Assembly: GCA_002104945.1 (NCBI GenBank)
Contig: MCFH01000047.1
Span: 1 to 64,000, forward strand
Length of the DNA: 64,000 nucleotides
Origin: Piromyces finnis finn
Lineage: Eukaryota > Fungi > Neocallimastigomycota
Direction of reading: 5' to 3'
Part shown: positions 4,381-64,000 of the stretch, piece after piece
Numbering within the stretch: position 1 is the first letter of the stretch
Layout of the letters: every line of letters starts with the position of its first letter
Translations under genes and position numbers: made by a program
The notes under the pieces: model-generated
Told to the model about the DNA's origin: nothing
Database searches by the model: none
What the model saw: only the letters and a program-made list of their open reading frames with translations

Positions 4381-5458
4381 TTTTAAATAAATATAGATTT
4401 ATTTACTATTATTATTTTTTTTAATTTATTTAACTTTTTATTATATAATATTTTATTAATAACAATAATAGTATAATAGTTGTTTTTTAGTCTAGACTTT
4501 TAATATAATTATAAAATATTATAAAGTTAATTTTTTTTCAAAAAAAAAAAGTTAATATTTTATGTAAAAAATGAAAGAAAGATTTTTATAAATTATTATC
4601 CTATTTTCATTAATAAATTTTCTGATATATTAATACTAAAAATCTTAAGCCGTTTTATAACAAATAAGATTTTTAAATAAAAAATAATATTAAATTAAAT
4701 TTATTATTAAAAATGATACAAATTTTTGAATATAATTATGTAATCACTAATGTATACATTAAATATTATTAAATAAAAAAGTACTGATCTTTAATATTTA
4801 TATTATTTTTAATTAATAAATATTTAAAAATAAAAAATTATTTGTAGTATCAAATTTAAAATAATTAGATATTTTAAATTAAAAAAAATTAAGGTTTATA
4901 AACATCTTCTTTTTATTTTAAAGTTGTACAATAATATTTATTAAATATAAAACAATATAGAACATGGTATGAAATTGAAATAAATATTATTTTATAATTT
5001 AATAGACTTATGTGTTTATAAATACACATAATTTGAAAAAATATAAAAGTTTCCATTTTTGTATACTAATATATGTACTCATTATTATTATTTTCAAGAA
5101 AATTATTTTTTTTATTTTTATATTTATATTCTAAAAGTATGTTATTTAAGAATTCATAATATAGTTTATACTTCACTATATATTTAACATCTATTACATA
5201 ACTTTAATAAAAAATAATTTTGAAAAATCAATAATATTAAATATAGTATAATATAGTGATTATAGTTATTCATATCATTATTATAATAAGACTTTAAATT
5301 TTTTATATGCCATATTTTTATTTTCGCAATGGAATTATAATTTTTTTTTTATTAATATTAGGTTTTTATTTACTATTTTTTTATTTTATTTTTTTTTTTA
5401 ATGACATTATATTATTTATTTATTTATTTAGCTTTCTTTCTAGTTTATTAATGTATTT

Positions 5459-34995: not shown

Positions 34996-37029
34996 ATGAA
35001 AACATTAAATATAGTTTTTACTATATTATCTTTGATAATAAGCGTATTATCTAAAAAAGGTGAATAAAAAATAAATGTATATAAAAAATGATTTAAAAAA
35101 ATATTTTATTAATTTTATGATTAATTTTAAATTATACAAAAAAAAAATCCACATACTTTAAATATATAAACGATATAAATGTAATCAAAAAAATAATAAA
35201 ATTGAATATTTAAAATATTTAATCATTTACAATTAATGAAATAAATAGTTTACTATGAAGCAGAAGATGGTAAACTTGATGGAATTACTGTCTATAAAGA
35301 TCTTTCAGGATTTTCTGGTACTGGTTATGTTGGTAGATTTGAAAATCCAGGAAATTCAATAACAGTAACAGTCAATGCACCATCAACTGGTATGTATGAT
35401 TTATCTATTATATACTGTGCTAATATGGGTCAAAAAATCAATACTCTTATGGTTAATGGTCAAAGTGCAGGTGATGTTACATTCACTGAAAATAAAAAGT
35501 TTGAATCAAAAGATGTTGGTGCTATTTATTTAAATAAAGGAAAGAATACTATTGGTCTTGTAGCTTCATGGGGTTGGATGTGGGTTGATGCTTTTGTTAT
35601 TAATGATGCTCCAAATGCAGCTAAAGATGTTACTTCTAAACTTAGTTCATCATTAGTAAATCCAAAAGCTATTCCAGCTGCTAGAAAGCTTTATGACTTT
35701 TTAAAATCTAATTATGGTAAGAGAATACTTTCTGGTCAAGTTGGTGCTGCTGGTAAAGCTGGTGATGAAGGTCAAGAATTCCAACGTATTAAGAATGCTT
35801 CTGGAAAATTACCTGCTGTTTGGAATATGGATTTCATTTTTGAATCAAATGATTGTACTTGGAGACCAGAAAATCCAGATATTACTGAAATGGCAATTAA
35901 TTGGTGGAAAAAGTATGAAGGAAAAGGTATTATGGCAGCTCAATGGCACTGGAATATTGCTGGTAAAACTGGTAATTTTGCTTTTTACAGTAAGGATACA
36001 ACATTTAGTCTTGAGAATGCAGTAACTAAAGGTACTTGGGAATATGAAAAGATTATTAAAGATATTGATCGTGTTTCAGGTCATATAAAAAAGTTACAAG
36101 CTGTTAATATGCCTTTAATATGGAGACCTCTCCATGAAAACAATGGTGATTGGTTCTGGTGGGGTAATAATCCAAAGGCTTGTGCTAAATTATGGAAAAT
36201 CTTATATGAACGTATGGTTAACTATCACGGTTTAAACAATTTAATTTGGCTTTGGAATGGTAATAATGATGAATATACTCCAGTTGACTATATTGATATT
36301 ATTGGTGTTGATATTTATGCTAATGACCACGGACCACAAACTACAGCATTCAATACCCACTTTGATTTCTATGGAGGAAAGAAAATGGTTGTTTTATCAG
36401 AAAATGGACGTATTCCAGATATTCAACAATGCGTTGATCAAGATGCTTGGTGGGGTTACTTCCAAACTTGGAATAGTGAATTTATTTTACAAGAATCATA
36501 CCATACTAATGCACAACTTAAAGAATACTTTAATCATGAAATTGTTATGAATATGGATGAATTACCATCATTTAATGTCAGTAGCTACAATGGTGACAGT
36601 AGTAATACAGGTTCATCTGGATCCAACTCCAATTCAGGAAATTCATCCTCATCTAAATGTTGGTCTACCGAATTTGGTTTTCCATGTTGTAAAGGAAATA
36701 CCATTGTTTTCACCGATGAAAATGGTGATTGGGGTGTTGAAAACAATAATTGGTGTGGTATTAATAGTGGATCAACTACTGTTTCATGCTGGTCTGAAGC
36801 TTTAGGTTACCCATGTTGTGAAGGCAATGTTGTTATAACATCCGATGAAAATGGTGATTGGGGTGTTGAAAACAATGATTGGTGTGGTATTAATAGTGGA
36901 TCAACTACTGTTTCATGCTGGTCTGAAGCTTTAGGTTACCCATGTTGTGAAGGCAATGTTGTTATAACATCCGATGAAAATGGTGATTGGGGTGTTGAAA
37001 ACAATGATTGGTGTGGTATTTTAAATTAA
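34996..37029 (+). CDS. manA: Cellulosomal endo-beta-1,4-mannanase: signal peptide - CBM35 - GH26 - linker - 3 fungal dockerins (CBM10-type); exons 34996-35059 and 35249-37029
   Basis: Exon 1 [21 protein letters not shown] splices in phase to VYYEAEDG, upstream of the listed ORF start. GH26 motifs [15 protein letters not shown] (acid/base) and VLSENG (nucleophile). Three CW...GYPCC...[13 protein letters not shown] modules. Very close to the Piromyces ManA sequence as I recall it. Confidence 0.95.
36748..37020 (+). repeat. Perfect 129-bp tandem duplication of the linker+dockerin module inside manA
   Basis: Sequence at 36781 recurs identically at 36910, and 36841 at 36970; identity runs to about 37020. 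Confidence 0.93.
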
Positions 37030-50156: not shown

Positions 50157-51262
50157 AACAATATTATAATATTATTAGTTATATAACAATAAATCCAATA
50201 ATCTAATGGATAATTTAATAAATATTGTTAAGTAATTAAAATATTAGTAATAAACAATATATTAAAAATAATGAAATTAAAAAAAAAAAAAAAAGGAAAA
50301 ATAAAATAAATAAATAAAATAAAAATGTTTCTATTGAAAAGAAAAAATAATAATAATAATAAAAAAAATTATTAAAATAAAATAAATGAAGCCAAATATT
50401 TTAACCAGTGTTTATATTTATTTTTTTTTCATGCTCTCTTTTTTTATTTTATTTTATTTTTTTTTATTGTGAAAATTTAATTATAAATTTCAATTTTTTT
50501 AATGTTTAATGAAAAATTTAATTCATAAGCCAATCAAAAAAATAAAAATCCTAATTATATTATAAATTAATTATGTGCTTTTTTATTTTGTCTTTAAATT
50601 ATAATTTAAAAAGTTTTATTGAAAAATAAAAAGTAGTTGTAATTAAATTTTAAGAAGTAAATAATTTAATAAGTTAATGCTATAATAAAAAGATATTCAT
50701 ATTTAAACATTATACTTTATAATAAATACATATATTAATAATATGAAACGTTATTATTAACTTTCAATTAAATAAAAAAATAATTTTTATACTAAACAAA
50801 TGAAGAATAAAATTTTTGCAATTTTGTTAATAATTTGAATTTTAATAAATATATTATAATAATTATTAACAATAATAAATAATTTCTATTTCATAACAAA
50901 CAGTATATATTATTTTTAAATGTAAAATAAAATCATATATTTCTATTTTTAAAATAGTTCTATCATTTCAATTTTTATCTATATATAGACTATTTATTAT
51001 TTATTATATATATATAAATATCAAAACTTTTTTTTTTTTTTTTCCAGGAAAAATAAAAAATAATATTAACAGAAAAACTTATCTATTCCTAGATTTGTAA
51101 TTTAGTGCATTCTTTATATTTTATTTCAATATTGTTTTTATTTTTTTTTTTATTGTCATTATAATTGGTATTTTCAATTATTATCAAATAAATTATAATT
51201 TAGTTAATAATAACAGTATTATATTTTTTTATATATTTCGTTAAAAGTGTATATTGAGAACA

Positions 51263-54200
51263 ATGGATAAAAAACAAAATCAGAATCAAAATGACATTTT
51301 AAATCTTTTAAAAGGCAAAATTGATATAAGTAAATTGGCACAAACAGATACAATTTTTCAGCAAATAAACCAAAAGAAAAATGAAAATAATAAGATAAAT
51401 GTTAATCAAGCATTAAATAATGGGAATCTTTTAGGTGTAACATCACCATTATTAACTAATTTAAATACTAACAATAATTTTATGAATTTAATTAACAATG
51501 ATGCAATTAATTTATTAAATCAAAATCAATTAAATGACTTTTCTTCATATTTATCAACAAATAATATTTTAAATTCATCTATTAATACAAGTTCTCCATT
51601 ATTTTTAAATAACAATTTATTAACTAGTAATTTACTATCAAATAATATTGATGCTACAAATGTATTAACAAGCATAACAAATTCAGCAGCAAGGAATAAA
51701 ATAAATAATTCAATATTACTTAATAAAATCAATCAAAATATAAAAGTTGATTCACCAGTATTAGATAATTCAAGTATATTAGGAAGTTCTTCTCTCCCTT
51801 CAAGTAATATTTTTACATACTCTCCTTATCCATTATACTCTAATAATGAAATTCAATCATTTTCTCCTTCAATTATTTCACCACCAATAATATCAAATAT
51901 AAACAAAGATACAAAGTTAACTTCACCCTCTTCTATAGCTTCAACACCCACTTCTTCATTACCTCCAACCCCAATTACAAAAGCACTCAGACCTTCAACT
52001 TCAACTACTACAAATTCAAAACCTACATATTCATATAAAAATTTAAATTCTAAATCATTGAATAAAAAGTCACTTCTTGAAAGTACATTTACTCCAGCAA
52101 TTTCTAAAAATAAAAAACGAAGCTATTCTGATGAAAAACTAAATACACATACTTCTAATTTTCACAAAACTGGAAAATATAGTAGGTGTTTTTGTACATT
52201 TATATATTATCATAATATAAAATAAAAAAAAAATTGCAACTAAAATGTATTTAATATATTAAAATAAATATTAAACCATTAGATAAAAAAGAAAAATCCG
52301 CCCAAAAACTTCGTAATGATAAAATTTTAGAATTACTTAAGAAGCAATCACCTGAATCACTTAGTTATGATTCAAATGAAAAGTTGATTAATGCAATAAA
52401 AAATAATACTTTCAAATTCCCAATAGTAGTATCCGATAAGAGTAAAAGTGAATTAGGAAAAACAAATTCTGGTAATAATGATAATGAATCAAAAACTTAT
52501 ACAATAGAAATAAATAAAGATAAAAGCAATGATAATTTAAAGAGTGAAAAAATAAAAGTCATTACGCCATCATTAAATAATGAAAAGTCTAATAAACTTT
52601 CAACAGCAAGAAATAATATAACATCTTTACAAAGTCCAAGTTTAAAAAATAATTATATGAAAATTCCTGTGACTTTAAGTACTGATAAAAATATATATTC
52701 AAATCAAAAATTAAATAATGTAAAAGATGCAGCATCCTATATTTATTTAAAACAACAGCAAATTCAAAAACAAAATAAACAAAAGGATTATTTAAATGTC
52801 AATTCCAATAAAAATGATAATAATAACCAAAATTTATTAAATAAACTAAATTATTCTTTAAATGGAACACTTTCAAATAATAATAAATTACAAACATCAG
52901 CATCAAATGCATCATCATTAGCATCTTCATTAACAGATAATAAAGTTTTTAACGATACAGGCATTAATGAATCTCTTTTATTGAATAATACAAGTTTACC
53001 TGAAGTAAACTTAGATTCAGTATTTAAAGATAATCTATTGAATAATATAGAAACAAATAGTTTATCATTAAACAATTCAATAAAAAGTAGTACCAATATA
53101 TTAAATAATAGCTTAATAAATACTGATTTGGATATTTCAAAAGATTTATTAAATAATATAAAATTGTTATCACAATCCTCTAAAAACAATATATTATTAA
53201 ATGATGAATTAAAGAATTCAAATTCATTACTTTTTAATCCAAATCTTAACTTATTTAATGCCAAAAATGAATTATTAATTTCAAATAATAATATTTCTTC
53301 AAATACAATGAAAAAAGCATCTTCACCATTAAAAAAAGATTTAACAAAACAGCAAAATGATATAGAAAAAAAACTAAACTCTTTTAACTTATTAAATAAT
53401 AAAGCACAGGAAGTTAATAATTTTAATAAAATAAATGGTAGAACAATTAATAAACCCCCAATTACTTCTTTTGGTACAGGGATAAATAGTATAAATATCG
53501 GTATAAATGATAATGTGTTAAATAATACTACTATCTTAAGTAATAATACTAGTAATAATAGTAATATATTAAGTAGTGGAAGTAAAAGTAGTAATGTTGT
53601 TAATTCCTCATCATCAAAACCAGACTTGGATAATAACTCAACATTATTGAATGAAAATATTAATAAGCTAAGTAATTCACTAAATAAATTAAATAATTCA
53701 AGATTAAACTCAAATTTAAGTAAATTTGATGTTAGTAATGCAAATAGTATAATAATGAATCCAGTAATGAATCCAAATAATATATTAACCAATCCAGTAA
53801 GTAGTATAAATGTATCAAATAATAATAGTATTATTGGAAATCCCTTGAATTCATTTAATATAGGTGATATAAGTAATCTTTTGACCAATCCAATAAATTC
53901 TATTAACGTAAGCTCAGCTAGTAGTATCCTTTCAAATCCTTTAAACACAATAAATGTTAGTTCCGCAAACCCACTTCTAACAAATTCTATAATTAATGTT
54001 TCAAATCCTTCTTCTTTATTAACAAGTTCAATAAATAATATTACAATTCCAAGTAGTGTATCTCTTATTAATAATACTATCAATAGTTTGAATATTAATA
54101 CTAGTTCAATTTTAAATAACTCAATAAATAGCCTTGAATTACAAAATAAAAATAATATTTTAAAAAATAATGTAAATAATTTAAATATTTCTCCAAATAC

Positions 54201-56604
54201 AAATATTCTAAATGCTGTAAATAAAATAAACGACAATGATAATACAATAAAAAAATTAGGAATAACTAATAGTAGCTCAGAAAAAATTTTAAAAGAGATG
54301 AATAAACTAAAGTCAACAAAATATAACAGTAACAGTAATAATTCTTGTCCAAACAATACAAATAATAATTTATTAAATAATTCAATTATATCGGCAAAGG
54401 CAACAACAGATAGTAATGTAGCATCACTTTTAAGTACCAATATAGGAAAAACAATAGATAATAATGTTGCTATAATAAATTCTATAAATAATGCCTATAC
54501 AAGAAGTAAGAATGATAACATAGCTCTTATTAGTACAATACCAGAAATTAATACAAATGATAAAATTAATTTGTATTTAAATAATACTAATCATATAAAT
54601 AATGCATTAACCAAAGCTAATAATGAGATGAATAATACTTCAGCTTTAATTAATAATGCTATTGCCAAAAATATAGGAGTAGATAATTCTACTACATCTT
54701 TATTAAATAATTTTAAAAATACTTCAACATTAAGCAGTACTAACGAATTATTAAAAAATTCTATAAGCAATATAAATATTAATAAATCAACAAATTTAGA
54801 TAAAACACAAGTGAATAATGAAACTTTATTAAAAAATACAATAAAAAAACCAATTACTGTAAATAATTCAAATGCAATTTTAAATGATACTGAAAATTCT
54901 GTAAATATATTAAATAATGTGCTATATAATGCTAATATTAAAAAAGAAGATATTATAAATAATAATAATAATAATAAAGTAACAAATTCCAATGATAATT
55001 TAAAAAACAATGATACAGTTCTTTTAAAGAATGAACTAAATAAAATAGCAAGTTCAAATTCATTAAACATATTAAGAAATGATTCATCAAAATCTACTAT
55101 AAATAAAAATATTGCATTATTAAATAAAGTAATGAATAATTCAATAAAAAAGACAGCTTCAAATACTTCAACAATTAATAATAGCGTTGCCCTTTTAAAT
55201 AGCCTTCTGAGTGAGGCGAATCCAACAAATGCTGCGATTTTGAGTAAAGTTATTGGAAAAACAAGTATTAAGCCTAATGTTAATAATAATAAAATAAAAA
55301 ATTCAAACTTATTTAATAATAATTTAAATGAGACAAAAGTTTCAAATTCAGAGATAAAGCCAAATTTAGCTGTTTATAATAAACACACCATTAAACCCCA
55401 GACTGAAAAGACTACTGAAATTACTAACAATAAATTAATTGATATAAAAAATATGAATATATCTCAAACTTCTTCGATGGACAAAATAGAGTATAATAAA
55501 AATTTCATAAATTCTACACTAAAAAAAATTAATCTTCCAAATAACAGTAATATAATAAATAAAAGTATTGAAGCATTTAATAATCTTATTAGTGGAAGTA
55601 ATCAATTAAATAATAAAAACAGTAATAATAAAATAATGATAGAGAATAAAAATAAATTTATTAATTCAAAAAATGCATCAAATAATGTAGTTACTACCAA
55701 CAGTCTATTATCTAAAACTAAAGCTTCAATTGATAACTCTAAAACTATAAAATCGCATATTCCTTCAGATTTATCAGCAAAGATAAATAGTCTTGTCTCA
55801 TTAGAAATAAAAGATAATAAGAATTTTGTAAATAATACAAATATGAAGAATGCTCAAAATGCACAAATTCTAAAATATATTTCACAAAATAATTCAAAGA
55901 TATCAAATATAAATTCCAATATAGAAAATAATATCGCAATAAATAAATCTAGTGAAGCGATTAATAAAGCAATATCGAATTCTTCTAGTGAACCTAAACA
56001 AATAAAGTCTGAACCCTCTACAATTAAAGATTCTTCTAATACAATAAAAAATAATATGATTAAAGTTTCAACAACTTCGAATACATTATTAACATCTAAT
56101 AAATTACTATCTCAATTACCAACAACAATGCCATCATCCACTATTGTTGTCACTACTATTCCTAGCGTATCGTCAGTAGCCAATACATCAGTAAATTTAA
56201 AGAATTCAACGAGTAATCTAATTTCTACAACGCAAAATCCAAAATCTTTCAAAAATATATTACCATCTTCAAATAATAAAATTAGTAAAAATTCAATTTT
56301 CGAAAAACCTGACGTCAATGTTATTAATTCTATCATTAATAAAAGTAATACTACACCTATAACATTAAACCCAGAAATAAATATTAAAAAAATACCAGAA
56401 TTTAATAAGCAGAATGTAGTTTTTGAAAAATTAAAAGAATTACAATCAATAGCTATAAATGAAAAAGAGGAAACATTTACAGAAAAAGAAATGGAAAGTA
56501 AGATTTTCAAAAATAACAAAAGATTATTGGAAGAAATACCTTATAAAGATCAAGTAAAAAAAAGGTAAGAAATTGAATATAGTAAAAAGATAAATAAATA
56601 ATAA

Positions 56605-61202: not shown

Positions 61203-62317
61203 TTTTAATATATTCAAAAATGACCTTTATATATATGGTGGCTTTTTGATAATATACTTAATTTATATTTCCCCTTTTTTATCTATTTTTTTTTTTTCAT
61301 ATTTAGATATTTAATTATTCAAAAAAATTATTAATATTTATAAATTTGCTATTTTTTATATTCATTCTAAATTTTATTTTAAATATGAAATAAAGCTAAA
61401 AGTTTAAAATTGTTCATAAAAGAAAAATAAAAAAATATATATATTATACCCAATTTCTTTTTATTATTATTTTTATTATATAATAAGTTAACCTTATTAA
61501 ATATCTATTATTTATATTATAATTGAAAAATAAAAATAAAAAATAAAAATTATTATATTTTATAAATATTTAAATGGATTTACATTTAAAATTTTGATAA
61601 TAGTGTACAAGCTTAAATAATTGGAATTTCTTTCTTAATCTTAAAATGATAAAATTATTAAATCTATTTGAAATTGAGATTTTTAAATTTTAATTTGTTT
61701 ATTGTTTATATCATACAATTTCCTTTTAATATAAAAAAAAAGTACATTTTTATCATTATTGTTATTATTGTTATCATTATTTATTATATAGATTTATTAA
61801 ATGAAACTGAGCTAAATTTAATTAACAAATTATTTATTATTTTTTACTATTCTTGAATTTTTTAATAAATATCATTAGATATACTATAATTATTTATTAT
61901 ATACTTTTAATTCTTATTCATTAAACAATGGAAATGTCAAAAACAATTAGATAAGTAATAAATATAAATTGTATTGAAATTTTAAATTTCAAAATCTTGT
62001 TGACAATTTTTATATTGACTTTATCATTAATAAAATAAACATAATATTCTTTAAAGGATACTTAGTTTATACAGTTTTAAATCATATTACCTTTAAACGA
62101 TTTTTAATTAAAAAAAAACTATTTTTCTTTCATCTATTTTATATATTATTTATCGGTTTTTTTTTTACTTGATAATTAATATATAATTAACGAAGGAGTG
62201 AAACTTCTTTAATTATATTAAATATTTAATTGTGTCATATATTAAATAAAATATTGTGTTATATTAATATTTTATAATTAATATTAAAAATTTTTTTTAT
62301 GACTTATAAGAATGGTT

Positions 62318-62794
62318 TCTGGTTCGACCCCGCAGATGTCAGTGCCTGTGGATTTTCCCACTGGGTTTGCCATGGGTTGGGTTATGATATTCAGGTAAGT
62401 ATAAATGAACTTTCTAATTTACTACTATGATAATAACACTCGTCTAGCCGGCCTGAGAGGGTCTAGTGTACATGGTACATTCCAAATTAGAACTTAATAA
62501 GTGGTGACTTAGGCTATGCCAAAAACACATAATATTCCTTAATCAATTTAAGTGTAAACATTAGGGGGCGGTTGACACGTGATCAAATTGACTATAAGAG
62601 GCTTAGCATTGTAGTTGTGAAATATCGTACAACGACATGCATCTAATGTACATGGATTAAGTGAGCGTCGAAGCTGAAGAAACAGTATGACAGACCAGGA
62701 GGGTCACAACCACCTAGCAATAGGAATGAGCCAACGTTTCTCTAAGAACCACCATTGGAGCTAACTCTGATCGATGGGAGAAATGCACTCGGAA

Positions 62795-62874
<80 letters not shown>
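62318..62874 (+). mobile_element. Non-autonomous non-LTR retroposon (candidate tRNA-derived SINE, 5'-truncated) with poly(A) tail and 14-bp TSD
   Basis: Identical ttataagaatggtt at 62304-62317 and 62875-62888. Uninterrupted poly(A) 62798-62874 (77 nt). 480-bp body markedly GC-richer than the flanks with no long ORF. B-box-like GGTTCGACCCC at its 5' end. Confidence 0.85.
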
Positions 62875-62876
<2 letters not shown>

Positions 62877-63574
62877 ATAAGAATGGTTATAATATATTTA
62901 CAAATTATATTTTAAACTTAGTATTTTGGACATTTCTATATATAAGCCATATAATTATAATAAATATATAAATGCAAAGAAGAAAAAAAAAACATATACA
63001 TAATTGATAATATTATTCATATCATCAGCATTAATGATCTAAATCAGAATTAAAGTTTTACCATATAGTGTTTGCTGATGATAATTAGAAATTATAATTT
63101 ATTATTAATATTAAATTTAAAATCTTCTTAATGTGTAACTTTTTAATCAAAATTAATTGTACTACCAATAATTATTTTTATTATCAATTATATAACCTTT
63201 TTATTATTTAATAAAAGAAATAGATAAATACTTTATAAAGATGATTACTATAATTATTATTATATTTTAATATTAACAGTTAAAAGTTATTATATGTAAT
63301 TTTTAATTTATTATATAATTTTACATCAGAAATTTAATGACATTTTTATCGATTATTCAATTTTTCATTATGGATAAATTTTTTAAATTTTATTAATAAA
63401 AAATTTATTTTAAAAATAGTATTCAAAAAATTGAAATTATATATAATATATATATATATATATTTTTCCCCTTAAACATATCCTTATAATTCTAAATAAA
63501 TTATACTTCTCAAATAAATTTGAACACTATGATACTACAAAATAAATGAATGAATATATATATTAAATAAAAAA

Positions 63575-64000
63575 ATGAATGATGAAGAAAAAAACAAAGA
63601 TACTTTTCATAGTAACATTGTAATTGATACAACTACAATTTCAGATGTTGCTACCACAAGAAAGAAATATAGAACAGGAAATAATCCTACTTCTGTCAAA
63701 GGTATTTTCATCTTTCATATCAAAATAAAATGATAGATAAATATATATTAATTAAGTGCTTATTATATCAAATATCTATACCATTATTAAAATTGTAATA
63801 TAACTTAGTTTATACAATAGCACAGGAATCAAGGTATTCACATATTCATTAATAAAACAAAAATTATTTAAAAAATAAATAAATAAATAAAAAATAGATT
63901 CTTATGTAGTTATATTTTAATAGATATTTAATAGTATCGAATGTACCGGTATTGGGAATTACAAAAGAATTGATAGAATTATTTGCTTTATATGGACCAA
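63575..64000 (+). CDS. RBM48: RBM48 (RRM protein of the activated minor spliceosome), 5' part; runs off the window
   Basis: Spliced RKKYRTGNNPTSVK|VYTIAQES|RYLIVSNVPVLGITKELIELFALYGP matches human RBM48 as recalled (RAKYREGRRPRAVKVYTINLESQYLLIQGVPAVGVMKELVERFALYGA). Splice phases are consistent. Confidence 0.85.

Follow-up and report, generated by a model that had tools for sequence, protein, structure and literature searches.

What occupies positions 62304-62888 of the window, i.e., of the whole 64-kb stretch of DNA analysed here, and by which route did it arrive there? An earlier note on this DNA had described a 480-nt non-coding body, a poly(A) run of 77 nt and a perfect 14-bp target-site duplication (TSD), and had taken the ensemble for a young, 5'-truncated, tRNA-derived SINE. 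Reading of the window and a script count reproduced this anatomy exactly, and the individual features are collected in Table 1. As set out below, positions 62304-62888 very probably harbour a copy of a high-copy SINE, a non-autonomous retroposon, that was inserted very recently and has lost its 5' end.

Table 1 Features of the insertion at 62304-62888 of the window and location of the related segment in four LINEs
Feature	Position	Strand	Basis or remark
5' target-site duplication TTATAAGAATGGTT	62304-62317	+	window read and script count
SINE body, 480 nt, non-coding	62318-62797	+	GC 0.417
tRNA-like T-arm, whole	62318-62334	+	stem TCTGG, loop TTCGACC, stem CCGCA (4/5 pairs)
B-box-like GGTTCGACCCC	62321-62331	+	inside T-arm
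GATGTCA, putative acceptor-stem 3' strand site, tRNA positions 66-72	62335-62341	+	inferred from tRNA numbering
LINE ORF2 3'-end-like segment, two hairpins	62663-62714	+	sequence match to LINEs and folding
Pure poly(A) tail, 77 nt	62798-62874	+	no other base
3' target-site duplication TTATAAGAATGGTT	62875-62888	+	exact copy of 62304-62317
Shared segment in LINEs	L022 3742-3782; L023 5183-5235; L024 4868-4908; L025 4966-5018		within called RT ORF

The body of the element begins with TCTGGTTCGACCCCGCA and finishes with GGGAGAAATGCACTCGGAAGTT. Given the base composition, we estimate the chance of a 14-nt exact repeat lying precisely at both borders of the element at about 3e-7. The element is also the strongest G+C island, the highest of five stretches in the window that reach 38% G+C over 200 nt. 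Its surroundings have a GC content of about 18%, intergenic DNA of the window lies at about 13-20% and most 1-kb bins of the 64 kb lie at 12-25%. The longest open reading frame with a start codon in the body comprises 43 aa and the longest stop-free stretch 51 codons. A protein search with the latter frame found no homologue, and a 30-aa ORF inside the SINE has no entry in the protein collection. A script search detected no second copy of the SINE in the 64-kb window, Rfam returned no family match for positions 62100-63100 at E<=10, and ARAGORN reported no tRNA in the window, as is expected of a copy that spans tRNA positions 48-76 only.

For an assessment of copy number, Logan contigs of four runs were aligned to window positions 61300-63900. 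These were a DNA run (X3) of the window's own organism, an RNA run (X4) labelled as the same organism, and RNA assemblies from two other organisms (X1 and X7). The attribution of X3 follows from its contigs, which show 0 differences from the window in the AT-rich flanks. Over the SINE body, the summed word depth in X3 amounted to 185,322-482,961, compared with about 100-700 in most flank bins. A total of 972 X3 contigs was found on the aligned stretch, 391 of them at >=99% identity, 322 at 95-99% and 259 at 90-95%. Note that summed word depth is not copy number; with single-copy contig depths of about 70-130 as the reference, it points to a family of about 10^3 copies of several ages in the organism's own genome. 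The assumption of a repeat family is thereby borne out, and a single-copy sequence is incompatible with the high copy number in own-organism DNA reads. The identity classes from 90% to more than 99% fit successive waves of amplification.

Depth in X3 climbs toward the 3' end of the SINE, which agrees with 5' truncation but is not a pure truncation gradient, as other repeats contribute to the rise over the last ~180 nt. Six X3 contigs match the window only from position 62619 on, the differing sequence before this point being AAAAATAAAGAAGACATAGCATTATGGTTG, and summed depth steps from about 286,000 to 434,000 at 62619. These observations suggest that other repeat families have only the last ~180 nt (62619-62797) in common with the SINE, i.e., that tails are modular.

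RNA of the SINE family is abundant. In X4, single contigs over the body reach up to ~23,500x while most flank bins are at 0, a ratio beyond what DNA carry-over could produce. SINE-body k-mers were present in public RNA runs of four organism labels (shares 0.61-0.95) and in DNA runs of one label. One RNA contig of organism A agrees with the window SINE at every base along 460 nt, as do two RNA contigs of organism C along 125 nt and 287 nt. We conclude from these identities, the pure A77 tail and the perfect TSD that the window copy is a very young insertion, in line with the age that had been proposed for it. Other collections were searched as well: three SINE patterns had no match in viral_contigs and the core pattern had none in genome_contigs, the two matches listed for the 3'-terminal 20-mer of the SINE in metagenome_contigs were chance ones, both in contigs of 58% GC, and about 200 kb of fetched DNA (Neocallimastix lanati, Piromyces sp. 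E2, the NCBI assembly GCA_002104895.1 and metagenome LINE contigs) contained the LINE core only and no copy of the SINE.

High RNA abundance, together with a near-identity in RNA runs of four organism labels that could reflect purifying selection, also speaks for a different origin, namely that the copies are retrocopies of an abundant, functional ncRNA gene with a tRNA-Ala head, passively copied by LINE machinery. We regard this origin as unlikely. Rfam knows no matching family, the whole body folds no better than shuffled sequences (z = +0.42), and a depth corresponding to hundreds to thousands of copies, along with identity classes from 90% to >99%, fits amplification waves. Furthermore, the body contains a LINE-derived module, a feature that characterises SINEs but not the ncRNA genes of a host. 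Retrocopies of a viral RNA or of an rRNA/ncRNA were dropped as candidates after the Rfam, viral_contigs and copy-number results.

An AT-rich, intron-like stretch of 53 nt (62395-62447, GTAAGT … TAG) resides in the SINE body. It is retained gap-free in RNA contigs and there is no sign of its splicing. A processed mRNA pseudogene was rejected on account of this retained stretch, the missing coding frame and the high copy number.

Longer copies of the family show what the window copy has lost. They diverge from the window flank at 62317, where the T is the last base of the TSD and matches the family sequence at the same time, such that the truncation junction exhibits a microhomology of 1 nt. The upstream continuation of these copies, GTTAAGGCGTTTCCTTAGCATACATAAGGC (30 nt), is identical in X1 and X7, i.e., in two different organisms; X4 shows its last 10 nt, and X3 DNA gives a diverged consensus with an agreement of 0.73. 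Head and start of the body together read GGCG TTTCC TTAGCAT ACATA AGGCT TCTGG TTCGACC CCGCA. If TTAGCAT is taken as an anticodon loop (U33, AGC, A37), the distance from the A of AGC to the first T of GGTTCGA downstream is exactly 20 nt. In class I tRNAs with a 5-nt variable loop, 20 nt is the canonical distance between positions 34 and 54. Since the anticodon AGC reads GCU, the head is tRNA-Ala-like; anticodon and spacing, and not a covariance-model score, are the basis for its designation as tRNA-Ala(AGC)-like. The anticodon stem is degenerate (TTTCC/ACATA). The B-box-like GGTTCGACCCC agrees at 10 of 11 positions with GGTTCGANTCC, the established B-box consensus. A tRNA T-arm with a B box at the start of the body, and a tRNA head in general, had been postulated from the window alone; the former has four of five T-arm pairs in its favour and the latter a continuation with canonical tRNA spacing in longer copies.

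The AGC anticodon loop 20 nt upstream of T54 also fixes the register of the T-arm in the window copy. The register places the cut of the window copy at tRNA position 48/49, the boundary between variable loop and T-stem, and leaves the T-arm complete. The earlier note was right in describing a 5'-truncated copy, as longer copies continue upstream, but not in placing the cut inside the T-arm. Neither can its proposal of a lost 5' stem strand TGCGG be upheld: the strand typical of the family is TCTGG and is present in the window copy. An A box is absent upstream of the window copy, just as had been stated, and because of this loss the copy is probably inert and not a source copy.

The recovered head continuation starts at tRNA position 18, such that the first ~17 nt with the A box and the acceptor 5' strand lie outside it. 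The longest RNA contig, from X1, has its start 45 nt upstream of the window copy's first base, near tRNA position 3; that of X7 begins 36 nt upstream, near position 12. Contig ends of this kind stem from low-depth or branch-broken assemblies and are at most suggestive of a true 5' end; those in X1 and X7 fit an RNA that begins at the tRNA-like +1 position. DNA contigs of longer copies in X3 extend at least 255 nt upstream, with sequence shown for 30 nt. From these data, a full-length element of about 528 nt plus poly(A) is predicted. The possibility that longer copies might extend into a reverse transcriptase (RT) ORF or into an mRNA had been raised; over the 30 nt shown, they extend into tRNA-like sequence, and the two RNA contigs come to an end shortly upstream. 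A TTTT at 62353-62356, ~85 nt from the predicted RNA 5' end, could represent a weak Pol III terminator, which would be odd for a Pol III transcript of 530 nt.

The 64-kb window itself contains no RT gene, and LINEs were therefore sought in relatives. Window positions 62663-62703 match five LINE copies at 77-90% identity over 41-53 nt. One of these is a degenerate non-LTR element with RVT_1 pieces in N. lanati (L003), where the match comprises 41 nt at 90% identity. The other four (L022, L023, L024 and L025), which carry the same segment at 77-88% identity, were obtained from NCBI, JGI and ENA assembly contigs by a representative search and a homologue search seeded with RT. All four have long called RT ORFs with RVT_1. 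L024 and L025 as well as the related protein P0302 carry an additional Exo_endo_phos (APE endonuclease) domain, and the closest solved structure for P0302 is human LINE-1 ORF2p (E 1e-29). L023 and L024 terminate in poly(A). In L022-L025, the shared segment is located within the last ~25 codons of the RT ORF and not in the 3' UTR, with the peptide SVNADNTVxQTSRVSAT. Just past the poly(A) of L024, a stretch at positions 5170-5420 looks by eye like part of the LINE 3' UTR in reverse complement, suggesting a second LINE tail arranged tail-to-tail with the first.

These matches bring up the question of whether the insertion is simply a 5'-truncated autonomous LINE, with the 480 nt representing that LINE's own 3' end. 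The 41-52-nt piece in the body truly is LINE ORF2 sequence; LINE copies are just as typically marked by poly(A), TSD and 5' truncation; and the rise of X3 depth toward the 3' end would be in accordance with it. Such an identity is nevertheless very unlikely, as it is only the short core that aligns to the five LINE copies, the remaining ~430 nt of the SINE aligning to none of them. In addition, the LINE reading frame of the core is interrupted by a stop codon in the SINE, and the core lies ~330 nt from the poly(A) in intact LINEs where this is visible vs 94 nt in the SINE. Finally, longer copies continue, over the 30 nt shown, into tRNA-like and not RT sequence, and the RNA contigs from two organisms extend no further than 36-45 nt upstream. 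The insertion is thus better described as a SINE that shares a module with LINEs. The idea that sequence is shared with a LINE stood up for an internal segment of 41-52 nt; it did not do so for the extreme 3' end, the common part being separated from the poly(A) by ~94 nt. None of the fetched LINEs has the last 90 nt of the SINE (…GGGAGAAATGCACTCGGAAGTT) at its 3' terminus.

Evidence for a LINE of this kind in the same organism comes from RNA. One X4 contig matches the window from 62663 on and before that reads AAAGGTTTGAAGCAACATCCAA, which resembles the pre-core part of ORF2 in L023 and L024, with a score attained by 1 of 500 shuffles for either LINE, and does not resemble the SINE. As this contig joins LINE-like sequence to the 62663 segment, we state that a LINE with the shared module is expressed in the organism.

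The core folds as two hairpins in all six sequences, i.e., the SINE and the five LINEs. In hairpin 1 (62667-62691), the GCUG/CAGU stem is invariant and the 6-nt loop varies; in the LINEs, the encoded residues vary along with it. Hairpin 2 (62693-62705) exhibits one compensatory exchange of an A-U for a G-C pair, and another pair is G-C vs G-U. In the hairpin alignment, 94% of the cells are paired; sliding the partners lowers this to 12-35%. As the alignment comprises six sequences, of which five are coding, a conserved double hairpin is a lead and not a demonstration. A more far-reaching joint reading would be that SINE and LINE are tied by the double hairpin inside the ORF2 frame, that the ORF2 protein chooses its template by a structured element in the interior together with the poly(A), in between the 'stringent' and the 'relaxed' mode, and that the family is currently active with about 10^3 copies in several gut fungi. 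We put this reading forward tentatively and consider it possible though rather doubtful as a whole. If it were true, a currently active SINE family could be put to use in these fungi, as an insertional tool supplied by nature or for marking strains. What is unusual and deserves attention is the internal location of the LINE-related module in the SINE and its coding nature in the LINE.

The insertion might, in theory, not exist at this site at all but stem from an assembly artefact or a chimeric join. None of the Logan contigs listed bridges either junction of the element, and a k-mer look-up for the 5' junction, with three words sampled, listed no run. As no listed contig or run spans them, the insertion junctions rest on the assembly alone. 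On the other hand, short-read unitigs are expected to break at a repeat of 10^3 copies and at a run of A77, and a perfect 14-bp duplication abutting the element's start and its poly(A) end is the product to be expected of retrotransposition and not of misassembly. Moreover, one X3 contig, aligned from 62886, begins with 32 letters that do not align, a length that would fit part of the A-run together with the 3' TSD. We therefore consider an artefact extremely unlikely and treat the element as a genuine SINE insertion.

The following sequence of events could have produced it. A full-length master copy would consist of a tRNA-Ala(AGC)-derived head, a family-specific body of ~300 nt, the 41-52-nt double hairpin, a further ~90 nt and poly(A), with the hairpin module in common with the 3' end of ORF2 of a resident LINE of the endonuclease type (L1-like). 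Its RNA would be made by RNA polymerase III from an A/B-box promoter inside the head, a proposal derived from the B box and the contig start positions. The ORF2 protein of the LINE, with its APE endonuclease and reverse transcriptase, would act in trans, nick AT-rich target DNA, prime on the poly(A) and copy the SINE RNA by target-primed reverse transcription. Synthesis or joining of the cDNA would have ended at tRNA position 48/49 with the help of 1 nt of microhomology, and a staggered second nick 14 bp away would have led to the TSD. In this scheme, the mobilising LINE is a putative one, and any role of the hairpins is likewise conjectural. The target, …ATGAC|TTATAAG…, differs from the L1 motif TT|AAAA, and as a single site it carries little weight with regard to target preference.

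As a kind of element, the SINE is ordinary: it is tRNA-headed, contains a LINE-related segment and ends in an L1-style poly(A). It resembles the Okada-type SINE/LINE pairs in that it has a tRNA-related head with B box, TSDs and a segment in common with a LINE, is non-coding, occurs in many copies and gives rise to abundant RNA. In contrast to those pairs, the shared segment of the gut-fungal element is not terminal but corresponds to about the last 25 ORF2 codons and is positioned 94 nt before the SINE poly(A), and the element ends, like L1-mobilised SINEs, in a long and pure poly(A) run. 'Stringent' and 'relaxed' features are thus combined in it. With mammalian L1-mobilised SINEs (Alu, B1/B2) it has in common the poly(A), a TSD of variable length (14 bp here), truncation with microhomology and the proposed mobilisation in trans by an APE+RT ORF2 protein; the fungal ORF2 has human L1 ORF2p as its closest solved relative. 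Alu and B1, however, have 7SL heads and no sequence in common with LINEs, whereas the gut-fungal SINE has a tRNA-like head and a LINE segment. Its target site also departs from the classic L1 TT|AAAA.

Within fungi, we take ascomycete SINEs such as Mg-SINE (Magnaporthe), Foxy (Fusarium) and EGH24/Eg-R1 (Blumeria) to be the closest known counterparts, likened here by description and not by sequence comparison. Ascomycete SINEs share with the gut-fungal element a size of ~0.5 kb, a tRNA-like Pol III head, an A-rich tail and TSDs. The host is different here, being an early-diverging, extremely AT-rich anaerobic fungus. A full-text literature search for SINEs or non-LTR elements in Neocallimastigomycota, Neocallimastix and anaerobic fungi, with Repbase and Dfam outside its range, found no description, which is in keeping with the statement in the earlier note that none was known from this phylum.

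Anaerobic gut fungi have large, extremely AT-rich and repeat-laden genomes, the mobile elements of which have barely been described. For annotation, the SINE needs to be masked, as a body of 42% GC looks gene-like in a genome of 18% GC, and it will inflate counts of tRNA-Ala and of pseudogenes. Its insertions could mark the phylogeny of strains and species. Moreover, it points to recently active LINE machinery in organisms for which genetic tools are lacking.

That the host is an anaerobic gut fungus, as had been assumed from the start, is corroborated by a gene elsewhere in the window. Positions 35392-37029 encode a GH26 mannanase with CBM35 and three CBM10 fungal dockerins, the best relative of which in the public protein collection is 85% identical, an exact match being absent. 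On the N. lanati locus L003 (6406-11840), two tandem mannanase copies with 85-87% DNA identity to that of the window are followed by two decayed LINE fragments. The dockerin-bearing GH26 gene and its ~85% DNA identity to the tandem mannanases of N. lanati are the grounds for this assignment of the host. ARAGORN found no tRNA on the 13 fetched loci. As a minor observation, the window also contains two long ORFs at 51254-56568 (323 aa and 1394 aa), which have no Pfam match, lie where the A-over-T skew is strong (0.15-0.24) and may encode low-complexity or repeat protein.
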